Below, piece by piece: positions 678-62,300 of a stretch of DNA of 64,000 nucleotides. The translations under genes and the position numbers were made by a program. The notes beneath the pieces are model-generated. The model ran no database searches and was not told the DNA's origin. It saw only the letters and a program-made list of their open reading frames with translations. The first letter of the stretch is position 1. Each line of letters opens with the position of its first letter. The stretch is from Paragordius varius (Eukaryota > Animalia > Nematomorpha), in the NCBI GenBank assembly GCA_964247055.1, contig OZ176054.1:11346001-11410000 (forward strand), written 5' to 3'.

Positions 678-680
<3 letters not shown>

Positions 681-2859: not shown

Positions 2860-3203
2860 CTTGTATATATCCATGTTCGGCTAAAAATGCTTGGAAATCA
2901 GGCTTGGAATTTTCAGAACTATCTTTGTCCAATGCATCATATCCAAAGATTTTGTTATCCTAAAATATAATCTTAAAAAATAACTCTGGATTCATATTTT
3001 ATAACGAATTTGGAATAACTAATGTCGCAATAAATTTTATAGGTTTGATTCAAATATGCTTTTTTGACAATTGGTTGGTCAAGTATTATGAAGTTTCCGA
3101 TTTGTAAATAACATTTCTCTTTATCCCATATGATTGGAAAGGTTTCCCCATCATTAGCATATACCTCATTTTTACCTAGTAGTGAATACAATTGATTAAA
3201 CAA
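2860..3203 (-). CDS. Two exons (E2, E3) of unknown gene copy B, joined across a 25-nt intron at 2960-2984
   Basis: ORF ...YCDISYSKFVIKYESR continues after GT..AG removal as DNKIFGYDALDKDSSENSKPDFQAFLAEHGYIQG, ending at a gtaatt donor. The paralogue at 21579-21913 has the same structure. Confidence 0.65.
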
Positions 3204-10080: not shown

Positions 10081-10243
10081 TTGGCGCGGTAACAAACCTG
10101 GCAAAAATTTCTCTGGAAAGCTTTGATGAAAAGGAATTGACCGATCTTGATTTCTGGTATTTAATAAATGTTTTCTGTGTAATATAACTTTACTTCTTTC
10201 ATTGGTGCGGTAATAAACCTGGCAAAAATTTCTCTGGAAAGCT

Positions 10244-19560: not shown

Positions 19561-20029
19561 TTAAAATGTTGTGGGATTCATCTAATGACCACAGAGTCCA
19601 TCTATGACTTTTTTATCCACTATTTTCCGGATCTATCGCTTTTTCGCTCACCTTCAACGGTATTCAATATGATTTTTAAAATCATAAGCCTACAAATATT
19701 GTTGGAATTGTTTTATTTAAGAATGTACCACGCTGATGCACAATATTTAGCTGGTCACAAGGAAAAGTTTTAGAGATTTTCAAAACTTGGAATATGATTT
19801 TGTGACGCCTCGTTAATTTATACAGAGGCATATGAGCTGAAACATAGAATTCTATGTAAAAAATTGGAATAAAGAATTATAAAATTAATGTAAGCGTTTT
19901 ATGGCAGTTTCCAGGCATCACAAACGGCGCAACGCTCGAGCTGAAAAAATTTAATTAGTAGAAAGAAATATCAATAAAATAATTACAATTTGATTAATTA
20001 ACAGTCTGATAATTTTGTATATATACTCT

Positions 20030-20890
20030 ATGTACACCCTGATAGATAAAAGTATCCGAACTCTCATAATGCTTTTGGGTTTGCTCTTTGCAAAAAATAT
20101 AGGAGAGTTTATAGTACTTTTCTGGTAACTCTATAACAAATTGGCGAATTCAGCGGATATTTTTCTAAATAAAAAATTTTTGGTGAAAGCTAAATTCTTC
20201 ATCCCAAAAAATATCAAGATATATCATGAATAATATAAAAAGTAAATCAATTATAAAATTTATGATATCTGTGGGTTCAGAAAGTTTGAATTTTCAACAC
20301 ATCCAAAATGGGCATATTTTCTTAAACTAAACGCAATAATGCCAATATTGCGCAAAAAGTTAGATATGTGCTAATGACATAAAAAAAATTTTTTCGAAAA
20401 ATTGGGTATTTTGCTTAAAAATTATATTTATAGCTAGCATTGGTGAAGCAAAACCTATTTTGAAGCATTGTGGAAACGGAGTAAAAACACTTTAAGATAT
20501 TATGCTAACATTCATAACATTATGTTAAAATTTCTATCATCGCAGATTTTTGATTAAAGATGCACTAAATTTTTGCGCTATGTCGGCATTTTTGTGTTTA
20601 GTTGAGGAACTGCCAAATTAGACGGGTCCAAAACACATCTAAAAATTTATAATTTAAAATGTGTGTTTTACTTTTAAGTTAGTTGATATACAAAAAATTT
20701 CTTAAGCAAAATATGCGCAAAATTCGCTACTCTCTGATATAAAGTTACCACAAAAGTAGTATTAATCTTTTTTTAAGGCCCGAAACCAAAAGCAGCGTGA
20801 GAATCCAGAGATATTGATATATTATTAGAAAGTCTATATATTTCATCAGGATATATTTTATGCCCCCGGATTTTGTGGGCAGTGTATATA
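20030..20890. mobile_element. Long imperfect foldback element (approximate ends)
   Basis: Inverted arms, e.g. ctcataatgcttttgggtttg versus gaaaccaaaagcagcgtgag, and tttctggtaactcta versus aaagttaccacaaaa. Ends tgtacac...cagtgtata. Confidence 0.65.
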
Positions 20891-21578
20891 GGAGGATGAT
20901 AACTACATAAAGTAGAGTAGTTTGATATGTTGGAAGTTGATATTATGGGAAAAGAATGATCGATAATATAGTTGAATAAATTGCGACAATATTTGAATAT
21001 AGAATATTCATAAAATAAAATATGGGGGCATGTCCAATTGTGTTGTGATGGTATGTTTTATGAATATAATATATATAATAACAATTGGAGTAAATTGGTA
21101 ATCTTCATATGCTTCAACATCAACAATTTACCTACAAACTTTTATAAGCAAAGATCCCGTATTAAAAAATAATGTTGTAATCAATCAGCATATGTTATAA
21201 TTAATCTAACAAATATGAAGCTAAATTAATAAAATTTTTACAAACATTTCGTATTTAAATATAATATAAAATTGTCTAAATGATTTACACACACGTCTTA
21301 AGCTTCTACAATCACCAAGCGCAAATTTGCGTTTTTTCGCTAAAAATAATTATTTACTCATTGCAATTAAAAGAGACACATGCATCCAAAGTACCAGAAC
21401 GTTAACCTAATCGGTACTTAACATATATCGTTTTGGGGAAAAAATGACAAGCAAAACCAGTTTATGACTTTAAGCAAATAATTGAACCAGGTAGATAAAA
21501 ATAATACATATATATTGATATTGAAACGTATAATGTTTTAAATATATATATATGTATATATATATACATAATAATTAC

Positions 21579-22352
21579 CTTTGATATTGCCATGTTCAGC
21601 AATAAAAACTTCTAAATTAGAGGTAAAATTTAGTGTTCTGGAAGTATCTTTGCGTAAAGCATCATATGCAAAAATTATATTATCCTAAAGTAAAATATTA
21701 CAAATTAACTCTGGATTCATATTTTATATCGAATTTGGACATACGAATGTTACAATAAATTTGATAGGTTTGATTGAAATGTTCCTTTTTGAGAATAGGG
21801 TTCTCATCATAAACAACGCTAGAGTTTCCAATTTGTAAAGAACATTTCAATTTTTCCCATGTTATTGGAAAAATTTCCCCCTCTTTCGCATATACATCAT
21901 GTTTTTCTATCATAAATTAAATTGAATTAGTAAAGCCGAAAGCTTATTTAATCGATAAATCTCGATAAATTAATAGCTATATTCAATATTTTAAAAAATC
22001 TCGATTTTATTTAAACCTTAGGCCACCAGTTTCTTTTAATTTCAAATAATTCTGAAAATTTTAACATTCGATTGTAAATATCAGCAGTTACTTAATTTAA
22101 TAATGCTTGCAACAATTTGGGTTTTCTCATTGTAACAAATAACTGGTCTATCCATATGTCTATATTCGGCAATTTCACTTTGTTCATAGATAGAGAAGTT
22201 TTGTTTATAACATTCGTGACATCCAAATTTATTAAAGAAGTTTTTAAACAATCGATTTGAAGTCTGATTCCTAAGATCGTCTAGGACTTTGATATAGCAT
22301 TTATGCTCCGAAAGCCTATCTCCCTTCTTTACATATAAGAGTGAATAAGTAT
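21579..22352 (-). CDS. Unknown gene copy A: exons E1 (22092-22352), E1b (22017-22051), E2 (about 21710-21942), E3 (21579-21684)
   Basis: Colinear homology with 2860-3203 and 6029-6356; GT-AG introns of 40 nt (22052-22091) and 25 nt (21685-21709). One apparent single-base deletion near 21915. Confidence 0.6.
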
Positions 22353-22639
22353 CTAAAAGTTACGATAAATAAAATGTAATGATAACCAAATTTATTATTG
22401 GATCAATTAATTTACAATTCAATACACTGTGAAGGCGAAAATAATAACCAGATATAAAATATATATTCTGAAAAATAGATGTTTTATGAGTTTAATGATA
22501 CTTTCGGTTGAGCCTAACGAGTGATTTAAAATTAAAACCATTTTTGTTGTCACTGCCTTATATCGCAATTTGTGCACATTATGCCGATTAAAATGGTGTA
22601 AGCTAAATGCTTCATTTAAAAAAATATTACTAAAATATA

Positions 22640-26070: not shown

Positions 26071-27207
26071 TGAAGATGATATATAGAAAATAACTAATTT
26101 TTTGTTTTTATAATAGCACGTTTAAATGCTTATCAGTCAGTCTTTTAATAGTTATAACTAGATAATTATACTATACAACAATGAAAGATGTAGGAATACA
26201 AAACTTACCAATTAAATAGCCTCCAATAGGGCTCATATCTAAGGTGACCAGATTTTTTGAAGGAAAAAAGGGGACAAATCTGAGAAGGAGGGGGGGTCAT
26301 TGGGGGGTACAACCAAAAATTTTTATACAAAAAATTCATTGTAATATTTATTTATTTTCAACACAAATACATTATAAATATAAAAAAAATTGTACCTTAC
26401 AGGTTTTGTACCTTATTCAATATATTTACATGTGCCCGAACAAAGGGTGAAGTGATTGTAAAATTCTAGAAAAAAATAATAAAGACGAAATCATCGCAAA
26501 GTGCGCTGGGTGATGCAGGAAGCGGCACAAAAAATATTTTTAACAATTTAGCGAATAATCTTAATCAAAACATTATTGGCAGATACACAATGCTATTTAA
26601 ACAGCTACTGATTTGTTACCCCTGGATGTGGATGTAGATGTTAAAATGCTGGGATATTGTAGAACTGTTGGTTAGCTCTTTTGCCAGCGATTGAAATATT
26701 TATAAAAATGTGATCTCCTAGAATTCTATTTTTTATCACAGGACAAAGGTCAAAATTCCAAGTCAAAAAAAGGTTAGAAAATAATTTTATACCATTATCT
26801 AAATATTATAAAGCATCCAGAAAAACAAGTCTCAATGAATAGTCAGAGTATAAAAATGTTTTATACAAACAGAAACGAGTTTGGAAGACAAGACGGTGCA
26901 CAATGACACTTTTTAATGAAGTCCCATTATTAAATAAATATATTGATAATGAAAACTTAAATTATGGACAACAGAAAAAAATACGTAGGATAGAAATGGT
27001 TAAAATAATCATTTTTAAACAAATTATGTTCCATACAATAATATTTTAATTGTAGAATTTGCATTATCTTTACCTGAACCACTGCTATTGAAGGCGTTTT
27101 TCCACAGTAAATTAAGTATGGACACGGAATCAAATTTAAATGTTGAATAAAAGCCATTTTATGTGTTCAAATATAATTAGACAAATTATGAAGACTTATA
27201 CAATATT

Positions 27208-29106
27208 TTAAGTAATTTTGTTTATTTTTAACATAAAAACTTTATAAAAAGAAAATATTTTATTGGTATATTTTTTGTTTGAGTGAATGCGTTTTAGCAG
27301 ATTATCATCATTTTTTAAAATATTGTAGAAGTCTTCACAAGAATTTGTCAAATTATATTTGACAGATAAAACGGCCTTTATTTCAACATTTAAATTTGAT
27401 TTTTCCGATGTCCACACCTGAACTGTGGAAAAAACGCGCTCAGTAGCAGCGTTGGTTCCAGGTAAAGATAGTGCGAATTCCACAATTTTTAAAATATTAT
27501 TGTATGTAATATAGTTGGCTTCAAAATGATGAAATATTTCCAACCATTTCTTTTCTACTGTATATTTTATAATTTAAGTTTTTCATTATTATTATATCTT
27601 TTAACTAATGATACTTCAGAAAAAAGATCATTTTCTGAAAGATTACTTTTTGAGAATTTTTAGTAGCAGATATAATAAAATGATTTTTGAACATCGCACC
27701 AATTAAATTCTGATATTAATGTTATCCAATGAAAATGATCAATTTCATTGAATTCCGTCGTCCGGTCTTCCAAATAATCTTTACAGTTTGTATAAAACAT
27801 TTTTATATGGTACAGGATATCTTGGCGATTTATTAAGCCTTGTTTTTCTAAATTATTTATTATATTGCGGATGGTTAATGGTATAAAATTATTTTCTAAC
27901 CGTTCTTGACATTGGAATTTTAGGTTACTAACTTCATTGGCTACGATTGCCAAAATTTTGTCACCTACTATAAATTTAATAACATAAAGAGAGAAGCTTG
28001 ATTGTGTAAGAATTCTAACCATATTTTTGAAGAATCACCTTCAAAAAACATTTTTAAAGTTGTAGGACATTTGTCTTGTGATAAAAAAAGATTTTAAAGG
28101 ATCATACATTTTTAATTCTTTCGATAGCTGGCATAAAAGCTAACCAACGAGTTTTACAATATCCAAGCATTTTTTGATATTGAACTTTTGCATTTTCACA
28201 GAATTCTTTAAGCGTTTCAACACGCACCGTGTATATATAAAAATAGGAATATATTTTAACAACTACATTTTCCACATCTAGGGGTAACAAATCAGCAGCT
28301 GTTTGAATAGCGTTGTGTATTATATGCGCTGCACACCCAACGCCAATAATGTTTTAATCAAGATTATCTGTTAATTTATGAAAAATATTTTTTGTTCCTC
28401 TCCTTGCTTTTTCACCAAAGTTCGTATTGGTGTTGTTAGCGCAATATGCGATAATTTTGTATTTTAAATTATTTTTTTCTAGAATATGCATTATTGAAGT
28501 AAATATTATTTCGGAATTTTCACCGGGTAGAGAAATTAAATATAAAATTTTAATTTTTACTCCGGTTTCTGAATCAAAATATCTAATTAAAGTGGGAAAT
28601 AATTTTGTTTCATGGTGATTTGATGCATCAAAGTATAGGGATAAGAAATTAATTTTCAGCAAATCTTTTTGTATTTCAGAAAATGCATGTGGCGAAAGGA
28701 CATTGCACACAATGGCTTCAGCCTTTGTACGGGCACATGTAAATTTTTTATGGAATAACGTGCGAATAACCTGTGAGGTACAGTCCATAGATCTAAAGGA
28801 ATGATTGTGATTAGCGGCGTGAAAAGATAACACGCACTCAGCTAGTGCCAAATTCTTTTCTTCCGTTCCAAAAGCGTTTTTTCGAAAAAAATCGCTCATT
28901 TTGTAAGATGATGCCGCCATATCTAAACATTTTTTATGTTTCTGTGTTTCCATATGCTTTGTAATATCATGCTTGCCGCCATGTGCTAGGGTGAATTCCC
29001 CCTCGCATATAAGACATTTAACAGATGATTCATTCTTTGTTTTTTTGATAAAAGGAAAATCTTTCATTAATTCATCGTTGAATTTACAACCTTTTTTTGT
29101 GCTCAT
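27208..29106 (-). pseudogene. hAT transposase, frameshifted
   Basis: N-terminal zinc finger CLICEGEF...HGGKHDITKH, then YFDASNH, CAAH-like motif, KTRWL, and C-terminal dimerisation motif SLPGTNAATERVFS, split over several ORFs. Confidence 0.88.
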
Positions 29107-31139: not shown

Positions 31140-34100
31140 TAATAGAAGTAAAGTTATATTACACAGAAAACATTTATTAAATACCATAATCAAACATGTG
31201 TCTACGACAGTAGGATCTAACTTAACATCACCCTTTCCCTGTCCTTGATACTATGTGGTGGGTGTCGGATTCGTGTAGAGTATCGCCGTTCTGTATGAGT
31301 GTCAGTGGTAGGTGTTATAGTGGGTGTTTGTTGGGATGGCAACTCAATGATGGGTTCCGAGGGTTGAGGCGGAGGTAAGGTCGGGGCTTCGGTCGTGGCA
31401 GTAGGGTACCTAACATATAGGTCATGCGATGGTGTATTTTCTTCGGGCGAAATTGTCTTTCCCATTATTCTTTTACCTCCTTCCCTTGATCTCAGCTGAT
31501 CGGCGTGTTTTCGGATGATTTTTTATCATCTCGTATTTCATATGAGAGTAATCCGAGTCGTTTATTTACAATTCCTTCTCGCCAACCATTCGCTAGTTCA
31601 TTTTTTATATATACTTTTTCGTTTTCATGGATTCGTGATTCGGTTGTACATCGTCTAAGAAGTCTATTTGTTGATATTGTAGCCATGTGATTGGATTGGG
31701 TAGGGTACATTTTAGGAAAAGTTGAGCGGGACATGTATATGTAGCACTGTTTATGTTATTGCGGTATGCCCAAAGCGTGTCATTTATTTTTGATTGTAGG
31801 TCACCGTCTTCTGCTGACTGATAATGTATTTTGAGGGCATATATCACTCGTTCCACCATTCCGTTCGTTGTTGGATGATAGGGAACTGATGTTACCTTAA
31901 TGTTTCCTGTTTCCATGAATTTTATAAGCTCCTCAGATGTAAAGTAAGACGCGTTGTCGGTTACTATCATTCTTGGATATCGACTGAAACATTCGTCTAA
32001 GAAATTTAAGATATTTTTGGTCGATTTTATGTTCGATAGTTTAACTTCGACCCATCGAGAATAACTGTCAATAAGAACTATCCAATAATAATTGTCTATC
32101 AGGCCTGCTATATCTAGGATCTCTCCCATATTGCTGTGTTAGTTCCAATTGTATGTGGGACAGTTTTCGCATCGGACGGTTTTCTTGACACTTTTTCACG
32201 TATCTACACTTTTTTATGTCGCTTTCAATGTTGTGCCAAAAGACTATTTGTTTTGCTTGTTCGTACATTGCTTTGGACCCGGGGTGTCCGACGTGCAATA
32301 GTAAGATATTTATTTTTTGAGATTCGGGAATTACTAATCTATCATGCCAATATAATAACCCGTATGTATTTTCAATTTCAATTCTAAGACTGTGTGGATG
32401 TAAAATTTTATTGGACCAGTTGTTTGTTTTTAGTGTAGTAATACCTGTTTTAATACGGGGTCGGTTTCGGTCTGGGTTCTAATATGGTCACGATTTCTAT
32501 TGAATAGATTACTATTGACAAATCTTACATGTTCTGCTGTTTGAAGGCTTTCTGTGCCTTGTTGTTGTGGTTCTGTCGGCATGCGGGACAATGGATCTGC
32601 AATGTTTTCGTGGCTTCTAATGTACCGTCGATTGTAAAATTAAATTCGCTAGCTTTATATATACAACGTAGTAGCTTGGGATTATTTATTTGGTCTAGTT
32701 TAAGATTATTTCCAAAAAGCTTTATTAGTGGTTTGTGATCAGTAGGCAGTTCAAATTTCTTCCTTGTAATAAACGTTCTAAATTTTTCAAAAGCGAAAGG
32801 TATGGCTTGTGATTCTTCTATTACTGAATAATTTTCTTCAGGTTTGGACCACTTTCTAGATGCGTAGGCAATGGGTTTATTTATGCCCTTCTGAGTGGTC
32901 TGTAGTAACACTGATCCGTACCCTTTATTCGAGGCGTCTATTTCGATTATTATAGGTAACCAAGGGTTGAACGGAGTTAGTTTAACAGTATGGCACATTA
33001 AATTTTAGGCTCTGTTAAAACAGTCCTCGTGGTTTTTGGTCCATATCCAGGGTTTTTACAACTGCTTAGGTCGTGAAGTATAGCCAAACTTCCATGCAAT
33101 TTCGGGAGGAATCGTGTGTGAAAATTTAAGCCTAAGAAGGACTTGAGTGTTGTTTTGTCAACAGGGTCTTGAGAAGTCTTGTATGGCTTTAACTTTATCA
33201 GCGGCTGGTCTACCGTTTTTTGATATAACATATCCCAAATAGCTTACAGAAGGTTGAAAAAGTTTTAGTTTGCTTTTACTTTCCTTGCGGTTTTTTCCTG
33301 TTATTAAATTATCCTCTAAATATACAGCTGTTCCTGGGCAGTCACCTAAAATCTTATCCATTAATCTTTGAAAAATGCAGGGGCGCTTGTTAGGCCAAAG
33401 GGAAGCCTTTTATATGTATACCCCACGGGTGTGGTGAATGTTAGTAACTTTTGACCTTGACCTATTGGCAATTGCTGATATGCGTCTTTCAAATCGATTA
33501 CCGAAAATGATTCTCCTAATCCTATTTTGGAAACTAATTCGTCAAATGTCGGTATATTATGACTGTCATTTACTAATGTGGATTTATTGCAACACGATAA
33601 TTTGCACATAACCATAAAATACCATTCGCTTTTGTTATACAAACAATAGGGGTGGCCCAGGTTAGTTTCTCAGTCGTAGGGTCTAATAGTTTGATTATGT
33701 CCGTTTCTAAAAGTCTCTTAATTTCAGAGTCGACATTTTCTTTTAACGGTATCGGGATGTGACACTTAAAAATTTTTGGTTTTGATTGTTTTTTAAAAAA
33801 AGTTTGATAGGGGTAGGGAACCCTAACTTTTCATAAAAAAATGAATTAAATTTATTAACAAGTGAATTTTCCTTAAATATATTATTATTAAATTTACAAC
33901 AATTTATCAACTATTTTATGGCATTCGGTAATTCTTGTAGCAAATCCCAACTAAGAATTGCCGGGGCTTTCTTGCCGCTTACAACCATACACGCCAAAGA
34001 TTTTGTTTCACCATCGCATTGTACCGTGACCATACAACTACCCTTGGAATTGATTCTTTGTCCATCATAGCTATACGAATCTGGGCCTGTTTGTTGCAAC

Positions 34101-35028
34101 TCGGGCTCCCCAATTTTTTCCCACGCTTGACCATCAATTATAGATACGCTTGAAACTGTGTCTATAATCATGCGTATTGGCTTGCCATTTATTATTTTTG
34201 TTATCTTGGGGGTGGATCCAGATTCGACATGCTGAACGTTGCTAATCCTTTTCTTCTTAGAGCACGATTGGAAGTGATTCGAGCCTTGGCACTTATAACA
34301 TTGTTTGCCCCAAGCTGGGCATCTGCCGGGTGCATGACCTAACCCGCAGAATCGACACTTGTTTTGGTATTTCCGAGCTGTAGTCTGCAATATCTGATCT
34401 ATTGTTGTTAGTTGGTGTGCTTTTTCATAGTTGATGGCAATGTTTACCACTTTTAGGGTTACGGTTTCGTTTCCCCACATGGCATCGGGGAATCTAGTAA
34501 ACAGATCTAGTTCTATTTTTTCCACTCCCATTGCAATGAACTCGCGAATTTTTTCATCGATGTCAAGCTTGAGTTGCATTTTGAGGCTCGGTTTTGACTC
34601 GTAAAAGGAATTCCGTAAATGTTTTATTTTTTTTCCGACGATGTTTTACGAAATATAATCTGGCCTGGAATATATTTGTCCTATTCGATACGTAAATTTT
34701 CCTGCCGGCTTCAATGATGTCCGGCCAGGAAGTATTATCAAGCGAATTTGGGAAAGGAATTGTTCGAATTTCTTTGTGACTTACATTGCTGCATAAGTGA
34801 GAAATAACGTGCAATTGTTGTCGTTTGCCGTCATGTTTTTTGCAGCTAGCATACGCTGAATGTATAAAACGTATCGCTCAAAATTTTCCTTTTCATCAAA
34901 CCTTTCCAGAGAAATTTTTGCCAGGTTAATTGACGCGCCAATATAGAAGTAAAGTTATACTACACAGAAAACATTTATTAAATACCAAAATCAAACATGT
35001 GTCTACAACAGTAGGATCTAACTTAACA
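31140..35028 (-). mobile_element. Ty3/Gypsy copy 2 (same family as copy 1) with short 87-88 bp LTRs, decayed
   Basis: LTRs at 34942-35028 and 31140-31227; TSD GCATC/GCAAC (1 mismatch); gag-PR-RT-RH-IN ORF fragments highly similar to copy 1. Confidence 0.92.
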
Positions 35029-36368: not shown

Positions 36369-39300
36369 TTAAACGCGCAACCAATACATCCCACCTCTGA
36401 TACGATTATAATCCAACAGATTTTCGATGGGACCTACAATATAAATATATTTACAATTATTTTGGGTATATGAAAGAATAATAAAACATGTAATTTTAGG
36501 TATCAACTTCGAAATAAATGAATAAAAATTAATTAATATTAAATAACAATCGTTAAAATAAACTGTTTTCTCTAATTAGGTGCGCTATTACTAAATATGA
36601 ATGGAACTGGTTTTTAATAATTTGGATAAAATATATATCTAGTCTATTATTCACTCTTAAAATTAAACTTAAATCAACACGTAACAACATTAGATGGTTA
36701 ACATAATTTCGAATGATTTGAAAAATACCAATGGCGGCAACGACTGGACACTTGTCATAAATATAATCCATACATGTATCTTTCACATCTTGTGCGGTAA
36801 CATCCTAAAACATATATGTCAGCCTGAATTTTTTTTGTAACTAAGTAATTGCAATATAAAATAAAATTTTAATGATTGTGCTATTGTATTTCTAGACCTT
36901 ATGTTAAAATGAGCATATATTAAATTCTTCAGGTATAATACGTATATGCATTTCGTAGTAAAGGTTTTTAAAGCAATTTTGTGTCAAAAACTCAGAAACT
37001 CAAAATCTATAGTTTTTTCCAACGTTGATATTGTAAAGGCAACTTGAAATTATGTTAACTCAAATTTAATAGAAAGTCTAATTTCTAATTTTTCCAATAA
37101 TTACTTAGGTATAGTTTAAAGACTTACAATGAAAAACAATCGGGTTTAAAAGCAAAAAAATGTACTAAATTTTACATTTATTCTGGCTTCCATTTCATAA
37201 AAGGGAATACGGCGTCCATAACATAGCATATGTCTAAAAACAATGTAAAAAAGAAGGATTGATATAGTATATCATAGTTGAAATTTAAAATATATATAAA
37301 GGATCATTCTCTAGAGTTTAAATATTTAACTATATTGGATAAAAATTATTTAAGCATTTTACTCAAATGATTTTATGGAATTACATAACATATAAATGTG
37401 CTTTTAAGTTATAATTTTTCACTTTAATACTAAATCGACTTTAAAAATTTAATTAAAAATCTAAAAATAAACATAAATACTTGTTGTATTTAATTAAAAA
37501 AAAGTTTGTATATTAATCAAAGCTAATATATATGTTTTATATTTTATTTGTATAAAAAATAAATAAATTTAAGCGATGTTTTAAAACTAAATGAAAAAAA
37601 TACAAAATCCATGGTATATCTCAAGTAATAAACGAGCATTAAAAAAGATCCTAATACTTTTAACCAATATTTCATGTATTAGAAAAACTAAAATTTTTAA
37701 TTAAAAAAATGTTTAGTAACCTACCTCCCAATATCTTCACATATAGGGGTCGATCCATCCAATTGCAAAAGCATGTTTGTTTTCAACAAATTTTTAGCTC
37801 TTTCAACCTCAAAATCGGTAATTAATGTACAAAGTCGCATCCTAAATAAGTAATAATAGATATGCAAAAAAATATTTTTAAAATTCTTATATTAATTTAA
37901 ATGGCTATGTCTTTATCGAAAATGATGATAATAATAGTTATTTTAAACGAAAAAACGCGCAAAATTAGATTTATTTGAAATACAGTGACATAAATCCGTT
38001 ATAAAAATGTTTGCTTAAAATAGATTTTCAATGCAACTAAATTCATTTCTATGGAGTTGTTGTCTTTAAAAAACAATGTTTTTACTTTTTATTAAGTATA
38101 TTACCCTCCCCCTCGTCCGTTTATATTAATTTTATTCAATACACTCAAAATGTTACCAATTTACTTTATATTTCTTCCTCCGTGCCCAAAACAAAATTCA
38201 AAAAATGGTTAGCTTTAAAAAACATAATTTATAAAAAATCAACTAAAATTCAACTTCTCTGCATCATTTATATTCTTTGAATTCGTAAAAGAAGACATAC
38301 CATTCTCTCTGTACATTGCACACCATATCATCGATAGCCATACGATCGCAAATGAAATAAATTCCCCACAAACCCGTATCCTTGTAGCACGTGTTAAAGC
38401 TTTGAAAACTGTGGACTTTATGGGCGTGTTGGGCACAAAGCGAAGCTAGCCGAGAGCCTGTATTTGGTCCAGCGCCCATTGAACGATCCCACATACCAAT
38501 CATCTGGGAAAATTATTGGCAAAAAAGGTGTTTCTTATATAACTAATTATAATGATAATATAAAAATTATTAACTATTAATTAAAATATAATTAAAGTCA
38601 TATAATTAATTTTTGGCGAAAACTTAAATTTTATTTTTTAACATAAATATGCCACACCTGGCAATTAGATTTGAATTTTGGGAATTTTCCGATGGTTATT
38701 ATACTATTTTTGCTTTAAAATGAAAAAAACTTTCAAACACAGGGAATATTAGGTGCATTCATACAAAATTTTGTTTTTTAACCCCAATACTTACCGTATT
38801 TGCAATCATTAAAGGGATATTATCTGCATTTTCCCAACCAACTCCCTCGACAGCAAGCGCGACATGGGCCAATGGCATAGCGTCATCCCTGACTCTAACC
38901 TATTTGACAAAAAATAAAAAATATAGTTATATAATTACCTATGCATAAAAATAATTTAATATGGTTGGTATGAAAATCATATTTTAGATTCTTATAATTT
39001 AACATATAAATTATGAGAAGCTTTAAACAATAACCATCCTTTTCCGTATGTTTTGCAAAAATAATTAAGGAAAAATGGTTTAGTTTAATTGGCATCTTTT
39101 ACTGTATACTCAAAAAACAGAGAAAATATTAAAAAAATATTATGTTATAAAAATTCTTTATTTGGAAAATAAACGACCCTTAAATTGGGAAACGCTGTTT
39201 TCAAAAATAATAATTGTTACATCAAAAAAAATTTGCGCAAAAAGTTAATTACAAAAATATGTTACTTAATGTTAAAAAATAGGCAAAAAAACCTCGCTCC

Positions 39301-42265
39301 CAGTATACCGACATGGTTTAATAAGTGGGATGGGAGAATCAATGTATTTGTTATCAACATGTCCAAAATATTGATCAGCCAAATCAACTAATTTCCCATG
39401 ATCAATTCCTTAATTAAGCAAATAAAAAAATAGATTTACATTGTTGCTTATTTCGCACTAAAGTTGGGCGATTTGCAACATAGTGTATATGGAAAAAAAC
39501 AACAAAATATTGAATAATATAAACAAAGTAATGTATAGGAAAGAAAATATTGTTCTTTCAACATTTTGTTGTTTTTTTCCATACGCTACTGGGTTCCAAA
39601 TTTCCAAACTATAAAGTGAAAAAAGCAACCATCATAATGCATAATGTATGAATTATGTATTTATTGATTATGTATTCACAATTTTTAATAACGTAGGTGT
39701 CAAATTTTATATCATTAAAATAAAGGTTGGTTATAAATTAGTTTTTATTCTTTTTAAAGTCCCAACCTATATGGAATCTTATCAATAATAAAAATTTTTG
39801 TATAGATCTTTTATAACAAATCTCATTACCCTTGTATAAATTTAAAACGTGAAAATGCTAAAAATATTTTTTCTTTTTAACAGACAGCAACCCATTTTGC
39901 AGTTAAATTTTTTTGACTAATTTTTCCTTAAATTATTCATATTGTGGTGTAAATATATTGTGGTGTAAATTTGAAGAATGAAATAATAAAAGCAATAATA
40001 GATTCAGTATTTTAAGTATATTTATTTAAAATAAAATTTTAAACAGAAAAAAATGTAAAAAATTAATTATAATTTTAACAAAAAAATATTAATGTGCAAT
40101 ACCTCCGGCGGCAGCTATAACCATGCGTGTCGATTTATAATGATCCTTGATATAATTGATTAAATGATTTCGATTGATAGTTCTATATATATATATATAT
40201 ATATTTAAATAAATAAAAATATCTTATAAATATAAATAAGGTCTATCAAAAAAAAGATTAAATAAATTATTTTTAACCAATATTATGCAAAATTGCAAAA
40301 TATAAGATAAAAATTTTCTATGCAAACTTCTTTAAATATAAGTACAATTGATATGATTAAATTTTTTCACATCTATTTATGTTTAAAACTACATTGTTTT
40401 AAATAAAAAAAACCTAAACATTTTATTCACTTAAAAAATATAAACCCAAATATATATCTAAACTCATCATTTTCAAAATAATAAATAAAAATTCCCAGAT
40501 TATACAATATAATTGAACTCAAAAAATTTTTAATAGAAAACAAATCAAACTTAATATTTTCAGTGGGTCCCAAAATAGTACGGCCCAGCGGAGTTCCTTG
40601 ATACGCACATGAATGCAAATGATCGAAAATGACTTCTTGTAAATTTGTTTCTACTTCCTATTTTAAAGTTAAAGTAAAAATTGAAATTATAAAGACTAAA
40701 CTACAAACTAAAAGGAAAATTTTTTTATTACAAGAACAGGCCTACTTTTAAAACGACGATTTATATAACCTTTCTTTATGGGGCTTAAAAGGACCGAAAT
40801 ATAATTTGCTAAAATAAAACTATATTATTAAAAAATATTATTACAGGTTAAAAATAGATGTATATATGATAGTTTTTATTTTTAGTTTTTGTGTGTATAA
40901 TTTCGTTTTTACCTGTAATTTTTATTTTTACTGTACATGCTAAAAAATATTTGTTTCCGACTTTTTTGAGATGTCCCATTTTTTATCTTTTTAAAACAAT
41001 CACGCGAAAAAAGGCTAAATTTATTATTTTAAATTATATAAAAAATTTTAAACTCACAAATTTATATATTTTACTTGCATTTCCCTCAAAATAACTCCGC
41101 GTTCTCTTTCTATTTCGGCTAACCCAAATTTGCTGTTTAGCAATATATCCGACAGAATATCCATTGCTATAAATAAATTAAATATCGTACATTTAGGTGA
41201 AAAGCCCTATCTTAACAAATTTAACAAAATACGGTAAATTTGAGATATGAAATGGTAAAATTAGTAAATTCTTGAGTTTTTAGAGATTTTAAAGTAAAAA
41301 TTATCAATCGTTTATCAACAACCATATATTTTAATACTATATTTATAAAGATAATAAGTTCAAAATTAATTATTCCCTTATCTAAACCGTCTGCCTAATC
41401 AAAAAAACTATTTAAAGAATAAATTATTTTAAAATATAATTAACTTTATTTCTATAATTTTTTTAACTTGTAAATCCCTATTCAACCAAACAGGCTCTTT
41501 CAGAATTTACTGTATAGTATATGCATACCTTTGGGTAAATCTTTAGTTAGACATTTGGCATAATACACTGTTTGTTCTCGTGAAGTATAAGCATTCAAAT
41601 GAGCTCCCATATTTTCGATTTCGAGTTCAAGGTCAAGTTGAGACCTTTTACTGGTTCCCTATATTTAAATTTAAAATAACATTCTTACATGAGTATATTT
41701 TAGTAAAAATAAATAAAACAGGTGGATTTATTAATTGTTTAAATATAAAAATTTAATTTAAGGTAATAAAAACGAAACGGCTTTTACAAATCAAATTTTT
41801 TAAGCATGGTTTTATATATATTTATTTATAAACAAATCACAAATCTTTTCCTAAATTTATCAAATTTAAAAAAAAACTAATAAGTTCAAATATAAAAATT
41901 AAGAGACAATATTAAAATATAAAAGTTATTATCCCATATAAAAACTAACTTTAAACGCCATGTGTTCTAGGAAATGCGCAGTACCGTTATTTTCTTCGGT
42001 TTCATATCGACTTCCAGCATCTATCCATACACCAACCTAAAATATATATAATTAAATATACTGTGCAAGTTTGTAGTCCAGAATCTTCTGAAGCGATTTG
42101 CATACCATTTTTTAGCGTAGATATTCGTGTTTCTGGCAAATTATATATCGTTTGTTCATATTTGACCGGTTGTGTTACCAGCGATCTTTTAAGCTATAAT
42201 AAAATAAAATAGGAATAAACCAAAAATTGAGTAGGTTTAGTTAGGATCTTTAACATTTTTTCCAT
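36369..42265 (-). CDS. PMPCB: Mitochondrial processing peptidase beta subunit, 14 exons, 470 aa
   Basis: Exons 42221-42265, 42062-42193, 41950-42036, 41529-41658, 41075-41166, 40551-40657, 40103-40182, 39293-39408, 38795-38899, 38301-38503, 37725-37841, 37176-37233, 36729-36804 and 36369-36433 splice in frame (1413 nt). M16 motif HFLEH intact, plus [12 protein letters not shown] and [13 protein letters not shown]; basic N-terminal presequence. Confidence 0.95.
39480..39590. repeat. Short hairpin / mini-MITE in a PMPCB intron
   Basis: atggaaaaaaacaacaaaatattgaa pairs with ttcaacattttgttgtttttttccat. Confidence 0.7.
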
Positions 42266-42353
42266 TTATTGGGATTTTAAAATGTTTCAATACTCAACAA
42301 AAATATAGGACATGTAAAAACATTTTTGAGTTGGCCCTCACATCACAAAAGGC
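42266..42353. promoter_or_regulatory. 88-bp divergent intergenic region between PMPCB and eIF2-alpha start codons
   Basis: ATG on minus at 42265 (alternative 42256) and ATG on plus at 42354. Promoter function is inferred from geometry only. Confidence 0.6.
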
Positions 42354-46212
<3,859 letters not shown>

Positions 46213-49220: not shown

Positions 49221-51530
49221 TTCTAAATGATTTGGCTAATAATTGTGAAAAGATTTTTCGAATAAAATAAAATATAATCGCAGATTTTATTCCATATTGT
49301 GTAAAGTTAATTTCGTATGTAATATAGATGGCAGATTCCTTTTTTTTATTAGATTTAAAAATAATTTTTATGGAGCTTTTAGTTTGGAGATAAAATCAGT
49401 ATTAACCGTCCATAACATTTAACTAAATGACAAAATAAATCTTCAGTATTTTCATTTACCTTAAGATAATTCAACATTATACCGTTACTTTTTAAAAAAG
49501 GGCTTTTGTCTCCTTTTCCCCTTCTTTTGGGAAAATACTATGAGGCAAGTCAAATTCATTATAAACAATCATTCAGTGATGTAGTCAATGCCTTCTCTGA
49601 ACGCTTTAACTGCACACCCTGGTTGAATGGTTGGAATTTGACTTCGGAATCGATATCAAGAGATTTCGGAAGCGTAATTTTTGTGCTATCCGGGGCTGGT
49701 CGGAGTTTATAGCTTCTTAGCGAGCGAATCTCTACGGCCCCTCATATTTTCTCTTAATACTGCCATTGGTAAAATAATGCACAATTATTTAACCATACGG
49801 TTGGATCTTGCCAGTCCCAAAAGATAATCCAAATTATATAAATATTTTATATCGTAATAAAAGATAATTATTAAATAAAGTAAAAATTTGAGTCTGACAA
49901 GTTCCAAAAAAAACTTTTTTCATATTTTACGGTGATTGAAATTACAAAATGATAAAGTACAAATGTTATAAAAAATCTGAAATTTTTAATTTATATCATA
50001 TTTGAACAGTACGTTTGCGTTAATGATGAATACTTTTACAATGAATGACTGAAGGTCAACGGTTCTTATTTTTATTGGTGGAAAAGCCAGAATTATTTGT
50101 AGACAAAAAGAGACTCGTTTAAAGTGGTTTGGTTAACAGCAACAAATCCTGAATACAACTGGGGAAACAAATATTTGCCCAGGAAAACATAACTTATCTT
50201 AGAGCAAATATCTCCATAAATGGGTATCTATAATAGCAAGCGAAAAGGCAAATAATTCAACAATCAAACTCAAATCCATTCAGCCTGCTTCGAAAAATTC
50301 ATACCCTGTAACTCAAATTTTTCGGCGATGTGATGATAGTCGACAACATAGAAAAAGCGACCATGTTAGCAAAGGGGTTAGAAAACGTGAAGACCTAAGT
50401 TACTATATTTAGACTAGATTCAATATAGCACATTGTATCCATCAACTAGATATTTAGTAACAGAACGCTATGGTCCAAGCTGTCTCAACTGCCCCAGAGT
50501 TTGTATCCAAACTAAGGGATATTCATCATCATCAAAAAAATTCTCAGGTGACATATGCTTGAACCTCTTTGTTGGCTTATTTTATAAGCCTTCTCTCAAT
50601 GCATTAAAATTAACCAATAATACACAACCTTATGAACAAATGGACCAAAAATATATTTGACCTAGTCACATTAAGAAAATGCTGTTAATTGGTAATAGAT
50701 TGTTTTTTAATGTATACTTACTTAACGCTATATATCTGTATATTGTACTCAACGTTTACCAATATGTTTTGGCCTCATCATATGGGGATTAATAATATTT
50801 AGTATATGATATAAATAGTGTAAATAATACGATTCATATCATGTTTAATTCTTCTTCTTTGATTTAATGTAGGTATTATGTAAGCATCTCATGAAATCTT
50901 AAAAAATGCCTGTCCAGAGCTGAGAGTTATATAAAAAAGTTTTCATGAGTCTTTTACTATTGTCGTCAAAAGATAAGTGACTAAGCACTTTTGCAAAAAG
51001 TGTTTTAAAAGCGAATTATTGAAGGTTTCATATTTTTTATAATAAAAATATGATTATATATTTATGAGTGTATGTGATGTAGCCTTTTTAATTCGAGAGT
51101 CGAAATTAAAAAAGCATTTTAGGTCCCATATTTTGCCAGAATCTGCATAGCTAAAATTTTAAAAAATATTTTATAATACATTTTTGAATCTATTCGTACA
51201 ATAATAATTGAAGTTGTAGTAATATTTTTGTTGGAAGTTAAATATTATATTATAAATTTTATTTTCACTTTAATCTCTCTCTCATTAATCAAAAAGTTTG
51301 GCGGTAACAACTCCAACACCATCCGTATCGATTTTTGTGTAAAACATTAACATAAAAATTAAATAATGATTAATTTTATGTTAATATCGTTAGCATAAAT
51401 ATCTATTGTTTTTGTCATAAAGAAAATAATTAGAAGCCGCATAATACGAAGTTTAAATAAAAACTATTCAATAAAATTAAAAATTTTGCTTAAATACCTT
51501 TATAATTTAAAAAATTTTACAACACACTTC

Positions 51531-54389
51531 ATGGACGATGATATTCCATTATCCGAATTCCGAACAAAATGGGATCGACTTTTTAATCTTTACATATACC
51601 CAATTTTGGCTGTTAAAGGCTTATTTGTAAATGCTTTTGCCATATACGTTCTTTGGCACGTAACATCACCAACCACACCACAGAACAATAATTATAAAAA
51701 AGAACCGATGGAAGCGGCTAAATCAAAAAAATTCCGTATTGATCAAAAATATAACTTGGCATATTATGCTAACAAGGGACGTTATGCTCACTCCCCATTG
51801 TTGAAAGAATCAAAATTATCTAATTGTGATTCTTTGCGGAAAAACAGCAAAAAAATTACGAAATCAACATCGGCAATTAGTAATGCATTTACAAACAAAG
51901 TTTCAAACTCCTCTAATATTCCAACATACACTATCCTTAAGCAAATAGCCGTAACTGATTTTTGTGTCTGCTTCTTTATGTTGCTAAATTCCATTTATCA
52001 ATTTCACAAATATTTGTCACCAAAACGGACAACGGGATTCATTCCTACTTGCACACCCAGGGAAAGTCAATTATCTTACGTGGCTAATTGGTTCATTTCT
52101 AAGATAGTATTTTTTGCCATAAATTATTTTTTGAAAGTTAATGTTTGGTTAGTGGTAATTCTTGCCTTAGATCGATATGCTATGTTAAAACACACAATGT
52201 GGTATTATGCCAATACGAAGATGGGCCGACAAAAACATTGTTCCCTCCATCACAAAAGTATACTTGTGGTTTATGCCACGATTTTTATTTACATGTCACC
52301 CTTGATGAAGAAATATCAAATTGTACCGATAAATTCTCATTTATTAAAGAATGCAAATGATGGAAACAGTGCTCACATCAAAATAATCACATTGATTATC
52401 CTGCACCTTACATTACATTATCAAATCATAGTAGCGCTAACTTAAATCATGCTAGTCTCAACCTTAAAAATGCCCGATTAACTGGACAATGCATGGCATT
52501 TTGCTTGAAACCAACATCGGTTCATTTTCATAACTATGAAATTAGCAAAGCTGTACTGATGACATTTGTCCCCCTAATAATTTTGATTTATTTAAAATTT
52601 TGTATTATTCGCAGTTACAAGGGTGCTCAAGAGTTTTCGGCCACCACCAGGTATTATGTTATAAAAAAACGATTTTCTGTTGTTTAAATTAAAAAGCGTA
52701 AAAATAATATCATTAGACCATAAGTCGCCAACACAAATGGCTTTGCGGGTCGTTTCGGTTTGAAAAACCGACGGACCCCATTCGAAAAATATGTATAATT
52801 ATTTTATTCGATTTTCAACATAAATTGTACTTTTTGTTTAATTAATTTTTGCTGGTTTCGCCAAAATTTGAAAAAATGTATTCAGTTTAACATTGCTTAA
52901 GGGTACCAATTTTATCCAGGTATAAATCGCATATTTTTGCAAATTATGAAATTTCGTAATATTTGGTATTTTTTCAAATTTTTTGTGGACCACACAAAAT
53001 ATTGGGGCACCGCGTGAACAACCCTTGTACTGGTACTTTATGGAATATTGGAACTATATTTCATAATAATTAATGCATTTGTTTTTCCGGAGAAATTTAG
53101 CGCCAAAACAGTTTTGATAAAAACATTCATGAAATCTAAATAAAATTAATTGTATTAAAGTAAAGAGCTTTTAAATGTATCATTTGATTAATACCTTATT
53201 AATTAAAAATTTTATATTTTAGATATGCCCAAAGTGTAATTTTATAAAACAAATTATACAGTCAAATCTTTTTTACGTCTTTTTGTGTAAATCTTTTTGA
53301 CTTTTTGGCGATAAAAATCACACTAACTAAGTTTAAAACTCATATTTTTTTATTATTTATGCTCAAATTGTTATATATATTGACCTTAAAAAATAACTGT
53401 AGAAATTGGTTAATAGAACCAAAATCCTTTTCGATTGTATATAATAAATTCGATGTTCAGCCTCCACTTATATGAAAATTATATATAACTTAAATAATAC
53501 TGATGAAAAAATAAAAATATCATATATATACCAATAGAGAAAACCATTAAGCGAATTTTTTGAACACAAAAAGTTTTTATTCTAACAAATAGAAAACATA
53601 TGTTGTAAAACTTTTTTTCTTGCGATCCCACGTCAAAAAGGTTTGACTGTATATTTTCATAAATAAAATCTACAAACCCTAAAATGTATAGTAGAAAATC
53701 ACACATATTTCCATGAGTTAAATGCAAAAAAATTAATATTTTATTTTGGATATAATATCATCTCATTACCGATGAATCAATATAAGGATATATAAAAAAT
53801 GAAACCTATCTATACCTTATGTTGTTTTAAGAGTGACATCACGCTGAATACTAGGAAAATTTGAGGAATGTAATTCAATTAAAATTGTTTTGAAATTCAT
53901 CTGAATTATTTTTCATTAATGCACTGCTAAAGTAACTGACATTTGGCTATTTCTAAATATTAAAATGGGTTTACCTTAAGAAAATTTATAATTACCATTA
54001 TTGCCTATTACTTTACTTTAAGTTTTTTTTTATAAAATAGAATATCTGGAGATAAAAATCTATGCAAGCACAATAGTTTAACATCAATCACAAGTCTGTC
54101 CAGTGCAAATTTCGGCAAAAGTACCAATATTAAGAAATCGAATAGTAAAATTGAAAAATCCTTAACTCTCATAACTTTGGGCTTTTTAGTTATGCTCATG
54201 ATAACCCTGATTCCAGCCGCTATTTCTATTATTCTCAATGCGATTGGGGGGAAACAATGGCGAATGACTTACTATAAATACAATCTCATCAGTAATGCCC
54301 TAGAGCTTTCAAACTGTGTTTTTAATTTTTACATTTACATTGGACGGAGTAGTGCATTAATGAAACGATTTCGAAGTCAAATAAATTGA
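51531..54389 (+). CDS. Class A (rhodopsin-like) GPCR, FMRFamide/peptide-receptor-like; reading frame break near 52320-52385
   Basis: TM1 YIYPILAVKGLFVN, TM2 LKQIAVTDF, TM3 LALDRY, TM5 FVPLIILIYL, TM6 ITLGFLVMLMITLIP, TM7 SNCVFNFYIY. Phase-2 intron at 52651-54040. Start codon uncertain. Confidence 0.8.
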
Positions 54390-56587: not shown

Positions 56588-59284
56588 ATGCACATAAAAA
56601 TTGCAAAGAAGCACTTGAACTTTAAGAAATGTCGATTAACTCGGTTTTTTCCAATATTACGATGGAGTCGAGCCTACAATCTCGAATATTTGCTATATGA
56701 CGCAGTGGCGGGTCTAACTGTGGGCATGACAGTCATTCCTCAAGGAATTGCATATGCTAAAGTCGCTGGTTTGCCCATTGAGGTATATGTTTACTTTTTT
56801 CAAAATACAGTGTGAGTAAATATACCTTGCTAGTTTTTCATTAATTTATTGAGAGATAGCATATACAACAAAAAGCTTTATTGAATAAAATAACAAAAAA
56901 AGCCAATAATATTTCATGATGCTGCATTTGCTATCTGGCGATTTATGGAAAGCTAAGAATATATATACTCATACTGTATATATTTATACATTGCTGTTTA
57001 CTTTTTTTGAGATACAGTATGAACTCATAGAAAGTTATTAATTATTGTCTACTAGTAAATACAACAAAGGGCAGTATTATAGGCTAATAATAGTAAAAAG
57101 TGAAAACAACAACTATAAGCCAATAATACTGCCCTTTATTGTATTTACTATTTGGCAATAATTAATAACTTTCTAGCAAAGTATACTTACACATACTGTA
57201 AAAGATAGTAAGAGTGTATAAACCTGTTTATAATTGTAAAATATACAATTCTTATTATTAGTCCATATATTTTTCCACTTCTTTTTTCGTTCTTATTTCA
57301 TTCTTTTTTATTACACTATATTTATATAAAGTAACGATATTTTAATTGGTTTTACGGGTCTATTAAATTGTAAATAGGAAAAAAACGTTAAGTGAGGATC
57401 CATATAGCATTATATAGGGCTCTTTACTGTAGCACCAAAAAATAAGCAGCTATTTGGTATACTAGGGCTTTAATGAGCATTGAATTAGTAATTTCGAAAA
57501 ATATGAGTCGGATGAAGTGCCTTAAATGGGCAATATGAATTAGCCGAGTATCGCTAAATTGCCCATGGAAAACAAAATATGGTTTATATAAGATTTAATC
57601 CTAGTTTATAAGTCATAAGATTATGAAAAGCCATAAAACATTTGGGCCACTTAAGTTAACTTATTTACTGAAATGCCCAGATCAAGGCTCGTTCAGATGG
57701 CTTCAAATGCATTATGGCTCAAGGTTGAGAAGACGAAATATTAAGCCTTCTTTTTAGACGCTTTTAAATTTAACCATATAAATTTAAAAAGAGGGGCGTT
57801 TTTTCGGCTTATTCACATGGCTCATTGGGCTAATTGAGTTTGCTCAACGGCATACTAACTCTTGTTTTTTTAGACTAGTATCGGTTTATTTATTAAAGGG
57901 AAGAATGTTACGTCTGTAAGGATAAATAAGTTATTATTGCAGCCTAAATTAAACTTTTAATCAATGTATATTTTTTCATTCTTATCCCTATGATCTAATC
58001 TGAATATTTTTAGATAAAATGCACAATATTTCCTTTTATGTATAATCTAATTTTATTATATTATATTTGAACATCCCCATGAAGTAGCAACTAATTTTCC
58101 ACAACTATATTCAAAGGATCTGTACATACTTTATGTCTAAAATAGAGAATATATTTAGGCACACTTAATATTTTTCTCTCTTTTCAATTAGTACGGATTG
58201 TATTCGTCATTTATGGGAGCTTTTATCTATACGTTTCTCGGGACTTCGAAAGATGTCACGTATGGTCCGACAGCAGTCATGTCACTCATGACTTATCGCT
58301 TTGTGAGCGTAGCCGTGGCTAAAACCATGAATACCGTTTTTGCTTCCAATGAACTCAAAAATGAAATAGTATTTTTTATGATATAGAGGTTAAAATTGGG
58401 CTAATAATACTTAAATATCAAAAACATATAATATATATATATTAAGAGCGATATTTTGAATTTATAGCTTATATTTAAAAAAACCATAATTTTCATAAAA
58501 AATAAAGTTTATGATTTTATTCGCGTAACTATATACCCTCTAAATTTTTTCCAAAAAATAAAATCCCTCATCTATAATTTACCCATCATCGTAGACGTTA
58601 AAGGAAGATGTGGAAAAGTCTATGTGGATACATTATAGTTTAATTTTAACCTTGATTGCTGGAATCATACAAGCTTTAATGGGGTTTCTCCGTTTAGGTT
58701 GTAAAAGCTTTAAATTTATACCTATATATTTTTATTTTACAGTAAAAATTGAAATTATGCGGACTAAATAAAAATCAAGAGACAATTTTTTACCAAAAAA
58801 CAACCATCCTAATTTATAATTCATTGTTCAAACTGCTAAGTATGAATGAAATAGAAATGTTAATTAGTATACAATCTATTACATATTTTACAATTGTAAT
58901 AAAATAGTTTATTAACAAAAAAATTCAGGTTTAAAAAAGAATTCCATGTCTTTTTTAAAAAGATATTTGACTTAATCTTTTAAAATTTGTCTGTATGAAT
59001 TGCATTTTTAATATTATTTTGTTTTTGTATAAAAAAAATTTGGATGTTTCAATAGGTTTCCTAACCAGTTTCATATCTCATCCAGTTCTACATGGATTTA
59101 CTAATGGAGCAGCTATAATCATTGGTGTCAGCCAAATAAAAGTAATCATGAGTGTAAAATTAAAATATTAGGACTTATTAGGGATAAAAGTTCCGAAATC
59201 AAATTTTATCCAACAAACTTACTATGTCTTCCGACATATAAAACAAGCCAAGTAATTATATTTATTGATAAAAAAATTTCAAAT

Positions 59285-59327
<43 letters not shown>

Positions 59328-62300
59328 TTTTTATGGGCAGAAAATGGGATTGTATCATTGGAATATCTAGTCTTGTACTGTTGTTAATATTAAAGGTATG
59401 CATATTTTTTATTGTCATAAATTCAAATAATAATATATATTTTAAAAATTTGTGATTTAATAAAAATTATTGAATTGCCTTAAACCATATCTAAGATAAG
59501 AGTGTTTAAGATACATATGGCTAAATTATACTGTTGGAGATGTTTTTGTTTGTATATAATTGTGATTGGTTCGAAGTTCTGGTAAAAGATAAAATACTAT
59601 AAATAAGTTCGAATAAAGTTTGTAAAGTAACAAATTATCCAGTACAAAATTGAAAATTATTAATTGTAAAAAAGCACTAAAAATGCGTTTTTTATATAAT
59701 ACAGTATAGTACAGTAAAATAGATAAAAAACGAATCTATTTTTTCTTTAAACCTCATAAATGGATTAATACCCTATTATTTGCTATTTTATTATATAGCG
59801 ATGCATTACTTTGCCATGTGTGACTAAAAAAATTGTTAACAATCCTATAAGAAAGTCCTTAAAAAGAACAGCGGCTCTAGAAAACGGAATACAAACGAAA
59901 TCTGAAACAACTCAGATTCTGGATCCCCTTGTTAAAAATGTGGCAGAATACGAAACTAATCAATCTCAGGATATGAATAGAAATAAATGGTGGTCGATAA
60001 TTTTAATATTTATGACCGCTTTTCAAAAAATTGTCTGGCTTGCCTTAACAAGTATTTAGTTGTGGTGTTATTATAAAATAACTCGAAATAGAGTTTTTTC
60101 AAACTGGAAACGGTTTTGATTTTCTGAAGACGCAAATTTATTATTTATATAGAGAAAACCGGTTATGGTCCCTAATAATATTGTGGATTTTAAGCTCGAA
60201 AAAGGAAATTTTAACACTTTTTAGAAAATCAAATAGTTTTTACAATAACCAGTCTTGGTATGGACCCTAAGGCTCTTTAACAGTTGTCATTCTTAAGCCA
60301 AATATTTTGTTTTTATAATATAATTAATATGATTATGTTTTGTATCATATTTTGTTTCATCATCACTGTCAGCCCTGGAAAGGCTAGGTTTAAGCTTCAA
60401 GAGTCCAGTTTCCTATCCTTTGAAAAAAATAAACAATATACCCTTATAATTAATCATCATAAATCTATAAATATTATCTATGTGTATATAGGCCGAAACG
60501 CTCTTATAATTGCAATATCTGGCTTATCGGCATATTTGTTAAGTTCACATTTATCCTTACCACCTAATGCTATAACACTGACTTCTGCAGTCACAAATCC
60601 CAACCCAATTTTTGCTATACCAAACTTCCATTTTCAATATAAATTAACAAATGTTGGTAGCAATAATAATAATTTATCAAACAGTCAACCAAAGGACAAA
60701 GATATATATTTATCATTTATGGATGTTTTTAAGGTAAAACTTGACTATAATTGTATTATAGGACATTGGTTTTGGTTTCGTTTCGATTGCCATCATAAGT
60801 ATCCTTGAAACATTGGCCATTGCTAAAGCTTTTGGTAAATAATGTTAATTTTTTCTAATTAGCCACACCTCTACTCACTTTTACAACGAAATAGCCAGGA
60901 AATATAAGTATACGATTGATTCAACACAAGAATTCATTGCCTTAGGTTAGATACTTTTTCAATAATTTGTTTGTGTGTTTTATTTTCATTTTGGCTCGCA
61001 TATTCAAATGGTCGTAATTGACAAATTATAAACTAAACTATTCAACGAATGTCTCATCGTTTATTGACCAGTTATATATTAAAATCAAGGTATTTATAAA
61101 AAAAATTAATTAATCATTATCAAATATATTATTACAATAAAATCTTAACATTCATATCTTATTCCGTAAAAAAAACTTATATATCAAAATAAAACCAAAA
61201 ATATCTTTTTTATTTTTTCATTTTTTTGTCATCTGGTTTATGAGTATATAAAAAATTTACTGTTTTATTTTGATATCTTACATGAGTGGTAATTATATAC
61301 TATATAATTTATGCAAAATAGGATTTAAAGGTAGTGGAATATCAACTAATCTTACAAATCGCTGTATTTAACACAAATTAATGTTTTTACTCAAATATAT
61401 ACGGATTTTTGGTTGATTTTCCACTACTTGTCAATTTTATTTTGTATTAATTTATATACTTTATGATTCCCGCCCATGTGAAATTCCAAAATAAAAGAGT
61501 AAATTTTATATACCTTCATAAACCAGATCAATAAAATAAAAAACAATAATTTTTAGTTTTAATCTGATATATGAGTTTTTTTTACTGAATAATATATAAA
61601 TATTAAGATTTTAATAAAGAGTTTAGCTAATAAATAATTAAAAAAAATTATTTAAATATAGTTTCATAAAAATTTTTTTGTCTTTTAAGTGTGTTAAAGG
61701 AAAAAAGCCATCTTTTAACTGAGATTTTATAGAAACCCTAATTATATAATTTTAGGCTATTTATATATTGGAAATATCTCCAAAAATGATTATACCATAA
61801 TATCTCAACTTTATCATTATTTTTTAATTATCCATAATTATCCTTAATTTTCACTTTTTGCCCGATTTCGATTTTCTATCAATATTTCAAAAACGAGGTC
61901 TAAACAAATAAAATTTTTACGACAAATGAATACGCTGATCTTAAGCTATCTCACGAAAAAAATTATTTTGTTAATTTTTTTTGCCATTCATCAATAATTT
62001 ATTAAATTCAAACATAAGACTGTAAAATGCAAGCACAATATATAAATGTGGTAAAAATTAAAATTATACGGACAAAAAAAATGAAAAGAATATTTTTTTA
62101 TTATAGATAACTTTACTTTTGATTTTTCAAATATAACTTCTTTTCTCAGTTTCAAAATAGGGCATAGAAATGTAAATTGTTAATGCACTTAATTATGTCA
62201 TTTAAAATTGTGATCAAATAGTTAAATGTAAAAAAAATTAAGATTTAAAAAAGTATGGGTTGTCTTTTAAAAAATATATTTGTCTTTATATTTTCACGTA

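Follow-up and report, generated by a model that had tools for sequence, protein, structure and literature searches.

Introns of 25 and 27 nt predicted in the MPP-beta gene of a hairworm, within the same transcript as introns of 291 to 694 nt

The window, i.e. the whole stretch of 64,000 nucleotides of Paragordius varius DNA that was analysed, has a G+C content of about 26% and carries transposon remains; the 26.93% of Gordionus is compatible with this value, and is not diagnostic of kinship. The minus strand of the window encodes, between 42265 and 36369, an MPP-beta protein (PMPCB), with a gene model of 14 exons and 470 codons that contains no internal stops. The features of this gene are the following:

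42266..42353, no strand assigned: gap of 88 nt between the head-to-head ATGs of MPP-beta (minus) and eIF2-alpha (plus)
42221..42265, minus: coding exon 1, with ATG at 42265 and a second in-frame ATG at 42256; start of a basic presequence
42194..42220, minus: intron 1, 27 nt, phase 0, GT..AG, with an in-frame TAG at its 3' end
42062..42193, minus: exon 2, ending in QTCT, aligned to UQCRC1 residue 70
42037..42061, minus: intron 2, 25 nt, phase 0, GT..AG, at the ancestral site between TCT and VG
41950..42036, minus: exon 3, beginning at UQCRC1 residue 71, with the zinc-binding motif HFLEH
36369..41949, minus: exons 4-14 and introns 3-13, GT-AG throughout, at sites common to at least two other animals

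The predicted protein possesses the M16 and M16_C domains, and its HXXEH motif is intact as HFLEH. Exon-by-exon database searches gave peptidase M16 and MPP-beta relatives as matches to single exons, all conserved exons were recovered by aligning full-length homologues to the window, and the closest relative of the exons in protein and contig searches was about 67% identical. The joined model was obtained with scripts only, through frame checks and the mapping of intron sites against fetched homologues. All thirteen introns have GT-AG ends, with lengths of 27, 25, 291, 362, 417, 368, 694, 393, 291, 459, 491, 371 and 295 nt. An earlier reading of this DNA, made from the sequence alone, had given 290-700 nt for the introns other than the two smallest, and the measured range is 291-694 nt (n=11). 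This sequence-only reading was mistaken in placing a kilobase intron in the same pre-mRNA as the 25-nt one, the longest MPP-beta intron being that of 694 nt; the mixture of tiny and kilobase introns is found instead in an SLC26 gene of the window, where introns of 28 and 30 nt stand beside others of 1409 and 1781 nt. The start codon that it had chosen, at 42256, is in frame, and another in-frame ATG lies 9 nt upstream, at 42265. The 88-nt gap towards eIF2-alpha (42266-42353) may represent a very compact bidirectional promoter, or the 5' UTRs of the two genes may overlap.

Several other features were observed in the window. A U11 snRNA gene (49495-49742, plus strand) shows a full-length Rfam match of 62.7 bits (gathering value 39). 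It measures 248 nt against 134 nt for the model, and stems I, II and IV carry insertions that fold as hairpins (z -4.2). The 5' end, the loop of stem III and the Sm site are all preserved. A retained minor spliceosome with an enlarged U11 is suggested by this gene; the long U11 of Drosophila is a precedent. A receptor-like, possibly 7TM, coding stretch (51486-54389, plus) displays an apparent frame shift near 52330-52600 and gave no Pfam or homologue match; it may be a pseudogene, be affected by an assembly error or contain hidden small introns. Among the transposon remains is an LTR-type retroelement present as two decayed copies in opposite orientation (10147-14007, plus, and 31197-34994, minus), which are approximately 89-91% identical; the second copy is flanked by remains of non-LTR reverse transcriptases. 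Also present are DNA-transposon-like ORFs (26391-29106, minus), accompanied at 26391-26900 by an inverted copy of reduced length, and, elsewhere, numerous MITE-like palindromes (4583-4996, 26909-27626, 39440-39632 and 61138-61613).

The 25-nt intron 2 of MPP-beta is flanked by exon ends that correspond to UQCRC1 residues 70 and 71. Its retention would shift the frame, the length not being a multiple of three, and retention of the 27-nt intron would bring in a stop through its in-frame TAG; on both points, as well as on the letters, lengths and GT..AG ends of the segments 42037-42061 and 42194-42220 (minus strand), the sequence-only reading matches the DNA. In the spliced gene, the motif spacing across the exon 2/3 junction is nine residues, which is also the spacing in 116 of 119 full-length homologues and in 63 of 67 metagenome or metatranscriptome contigs, and each of the eight other in-frame donor/acceptor pairs nearby would remove 7-38 conserved residues. 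Each of seven animal orthologues was mapped in exact spliced form to the gene that encodes it, and this placed a phase-0 intron at precisely this site in five of them (millipede, 242 nt; Owenia, 303 nt; sturgeon, 545 nt; Saccoglossus, 291 nt; and tardigrade, 561 nt), and no intron in amphioxus and scorpion. A new gain of intron 2 is ruled out by this exact match, and since the ancestral exon-intron structure has been kept in MPP-beta, intron 2 must have shrunk. The 25-nt segment is almost certainly a real intron, with its removal predicted from DNA.

For intron 1, the comparison is one of phase and region: the first intron of all seven orthologues has phase 0 and lies in the presequence, after codon 20-29, and the site match is approximate because the presequence is unalignable. 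The distance between the first and second introns is 135-153 nt in the five orthologues that possess both, and 132 nt in the window. The protein predicted with the 27-nt intron removed carries five K/R residues versus one acidic residue among its first 22. Taken together, the 27-nt segment is very probably a real intron as well, although here too excision is a prediction. GT..AG ends would be expected on a random insert at this place with a p of about 0.002, or about 0.007 when sliding of the junction is allowed.

Contigs from short reads cover both introns. An 863-nt contig (X1, 41913-42770) spans introns 1 and 2 with six other letters and five gap letters, and a contig from another study (X5, 42082-42376) spans the 27-nt intron with no differences. 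X1 may derive from the source study of the assembly; its many differences from the window make it at least another haplotype. The sequence-only reading had named beforehand, as a finding that would overturn it, that longer introns had been collapsed during assembly; judging from these independent short-read contigs, in which the length is unchanged at either intron, we consider such a collapse of introns 1 and 2 excluded. The five gap letters of X1 match a 5-nt insertion listed at 42492, in intron 1 of eIF2-alpha. This intron (42484-42539, plus) is 56 nt long in the window and 5 nt longer behind 42492 in X1 and X5, and is thus length-polymorphic.

The long-intron part of the model is supported by contig junctions in a relative. 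Contig sequence from two further sources (X6 and X8, window positions 38300-40657), which are possible RNA runs, no run with this locus being on record as RNA, is about 82-84% identical to MPP-beta exons 6, 7 and 10, with exons 1-3, and hence the junctions of both tiny introns, outside its coverage. Junctions 5/6, 6/7 and 10/11 are joined in this mRNA-like contig. The spacing of the X8 pieces (13 and 307 letters) is exactly that of the spliced model, and the loose ends of X8, once translated, read as the last part of exon 5 and the first part of exon 11. X6 and X8 share the species label of X1, and given a transcript that is only about 82-84% identical, more than one species is probably included under this label.

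Tiny introns are also predicted in other genes of the window:

59142..59171, plus: SLC26 intron 4, 30 nt, mid-gene, from a frame-consistent model
60734..60761, plus: SLC26 intron 8, 28 nt, mid-gene, from a frame-consistent model
2960..2984, minus: 25-nt intron in paralogue A of an unnamed gene, from a frame model
21685..21709, minus: 25-nt intron in paralogue B of the same gene, at the same site as in A, from a frame model

The SLC26 gene runs on the plus strand from 56588 to beyond 63954, with a Pfam Sulfate_transp match on exons 1-2. Long introns precede its two tiny ones (the fourth and the eighth), which indicates that the tiny class is not confined to the starts of genes. The unnamed multi-exon paralogues (1-6400 and 14200-22400, both minus) gave no Pfam or Atlas match; between their 25-nt introns, 5 of the 25 positions are different, a divergence similar to that of the flanking exons. 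Among the 36 introns of the window, six (17%) are at most 30 nt long; by size class, 6 measure 25-30 nt, 5 measure 56-89 nt and 25 measure 196-1781 nt, while the ranges 31-55 and 90-195 nt are empty; the median of this window sample is 326.5 nt. Apart from the tiny pair of MPP-beta, the neighbours of tiny introns in this sample measure 89-440 nt. A codon-score scan returned the known 25-nt site as its sole credible match and missed other known tiny introns, and is therefore not a census.

We favour, with a probability of roughly 75%, the reading that introns 1 and 2 of MPP-beta are ancient introns, not newly gained ones, which deletions would have shrunk to 27 and 25 nt, and that they are removed by the major spliceosome working with a relaxed donor-to-branch limit, splicing being read here from DNA. 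Tiny and long introns alike would be handled by one U2-type spliceosome, which would excise the tiny ones by intron definition and from minimal signals: a GTW donor and a T-rich end in TAG. The tolerated distance between donor and branch point would then be approximately 10-21 nt, versus a human minimum of roughly 46 nt, the smallest productive donor-to-branch distance reported in human cells (PMC11291888). It is because of this human minimum that the "modified or flexible spliceosome" proposed in the sequence-only reading was a reasonable inference; tiny introns spliced in myxobolids with canonical U2 pairing, U2AF1 and U2AF2 imply that small size alone does not call for a rebuilt machine. 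The branch point could lie in either of two places. An A at -7 from the acceptor would leave a tail of 6 nt and no space for a normal U2AF65 tract, and an A at +10 to +12 from the donor, found in a T-R-A context in five of the six tiny introns, would give a small loop like that of Stentor and a longer T-rich tail. No U1, U2 or U2AF gene was found within the 64-kb window. Splicing of the U12 type was rejected, the RTATCCTT donor and the TCCTTAAC branch site being absent and the donors reading GTTTAT and GTATAT. Excision guided by a hairpin is unlikely, with folding energies of 0 and -1.9 kcal/mol for the two introns.

A single relaxed major spliceosome is favoured over a dedicated mode for short introns that would operate beside an ordinary mode for long ones, for example through a U2AF65-independent ruler that fixes the branch A at a distance of 7-8 nt from the AG. 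Such a separate class would be consistent with the size gaps, there being no window introns of 31-55 or 90-195 nt, and with the A at -7, which all six tiny introns carry but only 10 of the 30 longer introns do (uncorrected Fisher p 0.004). The sample, however, comprises 36 introns; after correction for position, each of the two branch signals reaches a p of about 0.03 with six introns and about 0.1 (0.11 at most) with the paralogues counted once; and the A at -7 stands in a TNAY context in only two of the six. Canonical U2 and U2AF, moreover, splice introns of this kind in myxobolids. Two splice-site geometries in one transcript, with a discrete class of 21-30 nt in which the branch A keeps a fixed distance of about 7 nt to the AG, seem to us an unlikely arrangement; if it were true, it would point to lineage-specific changes in U2AF, SF1, SF3B or branching factors that are undescribed in animals.

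Less probable still is that the 25-nt intron is real and the first intron longer, of 69, 105, 108 or 118 nt. The approximate site match of the 27-nt intron leaves room for this, and four other combinations of ATG, donor and acceptor, which use donors lying upstream or an AAG acceptor lying downstream, stay in frame. All four, however, leave 4-6 residues N-terminal of the exon 2 sequence, where exon 1 of the orthologues encodes 20-29, and most of the basic presequence would be lost. Three of them need either ATGs situated 12-41 nt from that of eIF2-alpha or the weaker AAG acceptor, and the 69-nt version passes over the AG that comes first downstream of the T-tract. As the ATGs of MPP-beta and eIF2-alpha stand only 88 nt apart, there is little room for an alternative exon 1. 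Finally, that the segments are not spliced at all, being either longer introns that collapsed in assembly or short insertions within a dead copy of the gene, is very improbable: it could draw on the fact that splicing was deduced from DNA and on the many decayed elements and the frameshifted receptor-like gene of the window, but it is opposed by the unchanged lengths in independent short-read contigs, by a gene that is otherwise intact over 14 exons and its HXXEH motif, and by the GT..AG ends of both inserts, one of which sits on an ancestral intron site. The earlier claim that these are real spliceosomal introns beside long ones is well supported at the level of frame, homology, ancestral position and independent DNA contigs.

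Introns of 25 nt in essential genes, together with introns of 300-1800 nt and transposons, would mean that introns can fall below the lower size limit in a genome that has not been compacted. MPP-beta is a clean example, with one tiny intron at an exactly conserved site in the core of an essential enzyme. The presence of tiny and long introns within one transcript and one nucleus provides an internal control, and makes it possible to test what determines the minimum distance from donor to branch point. Gene finders with a minimum intron above 30 nt would presumably mis-model such genes, and counts of gene loss in this lineage could be inflated.

The MPP-beta gene resembles the PMPCB genes of other animals in its protein family, its HXXEH motif and its intron sites, 12 of 13 being exactly common, and departs from them in the size of introns 1 and 2 (27 and 25 nt, versus 279-5730 and 242-561 nt). 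In a 2026 study of 51 genomes, in which a hairworm was not necessarily included, animal introns below 30 nt occurred only in myxobolids and Dicyema (PMC13644364), and our literature search found no published report on hairworm intron sizes. The sequence-only reading had rightly listed dicyemids among the taxa with such introns; its list was out of date, as the myxobolid myxozoans have now been published too (PMC13644364). Myxobolids have a median intron of 22-27 nt, with short introns flanked by short ones, canonical U2 pairing and both U2AF1 and U2AF2 retained (PMC13644364). Like the hairworm introns, those of Henneguya salminicola, Thelohanellus kitauei and Myxobolus rasmusseni are GT-AG introns of less than 30 nt at conserved positions, with a reduced donor signal and a weak A upstream of the AG (PMC13644364). 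Unlike in myxobolids, the median in the window is about 326 nt, the 25-nt intron is followed by one of 291 nt, and transposon remains are many. In Dicyema sp., the median intron is 27 nt and two thirds are below 30 nt (PMC6543705), in contrast to 6 of 36 (17%) at 30 nt or less here; dicyemids (Dicyema sp. and D. japonicum) likewise show an ancestral exon-intron structure with introns shrunk below 30 nt (PMC6543705). In the ciliate Stentor coeruleus, introns of 15-16 nt have a predicted 10-11-nt loop and a 5-nt tail and are spliced by a largely conserved spliceosome (PMC9505925). AU-rich introns and a similar candidate branch geometry (10-11-nt loop or short tail) are common to Stentor and the window, but where Stentor has a uniform length and a fixed branch A, the introns here range from 25 to 1781 nt, with branch candidates only. 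The genome-level trait of myxobolids and dicyemids, a median below 30 nt with short introns beside short ones, is not seen in the window sample. The tiny introns thus match those of myxobolids and dicyemids singly, yet not in this genome-level feature, and the "undescribed system" of the sequence-only reading was an overstatement for what is a known phenomenon in an unreported setting.
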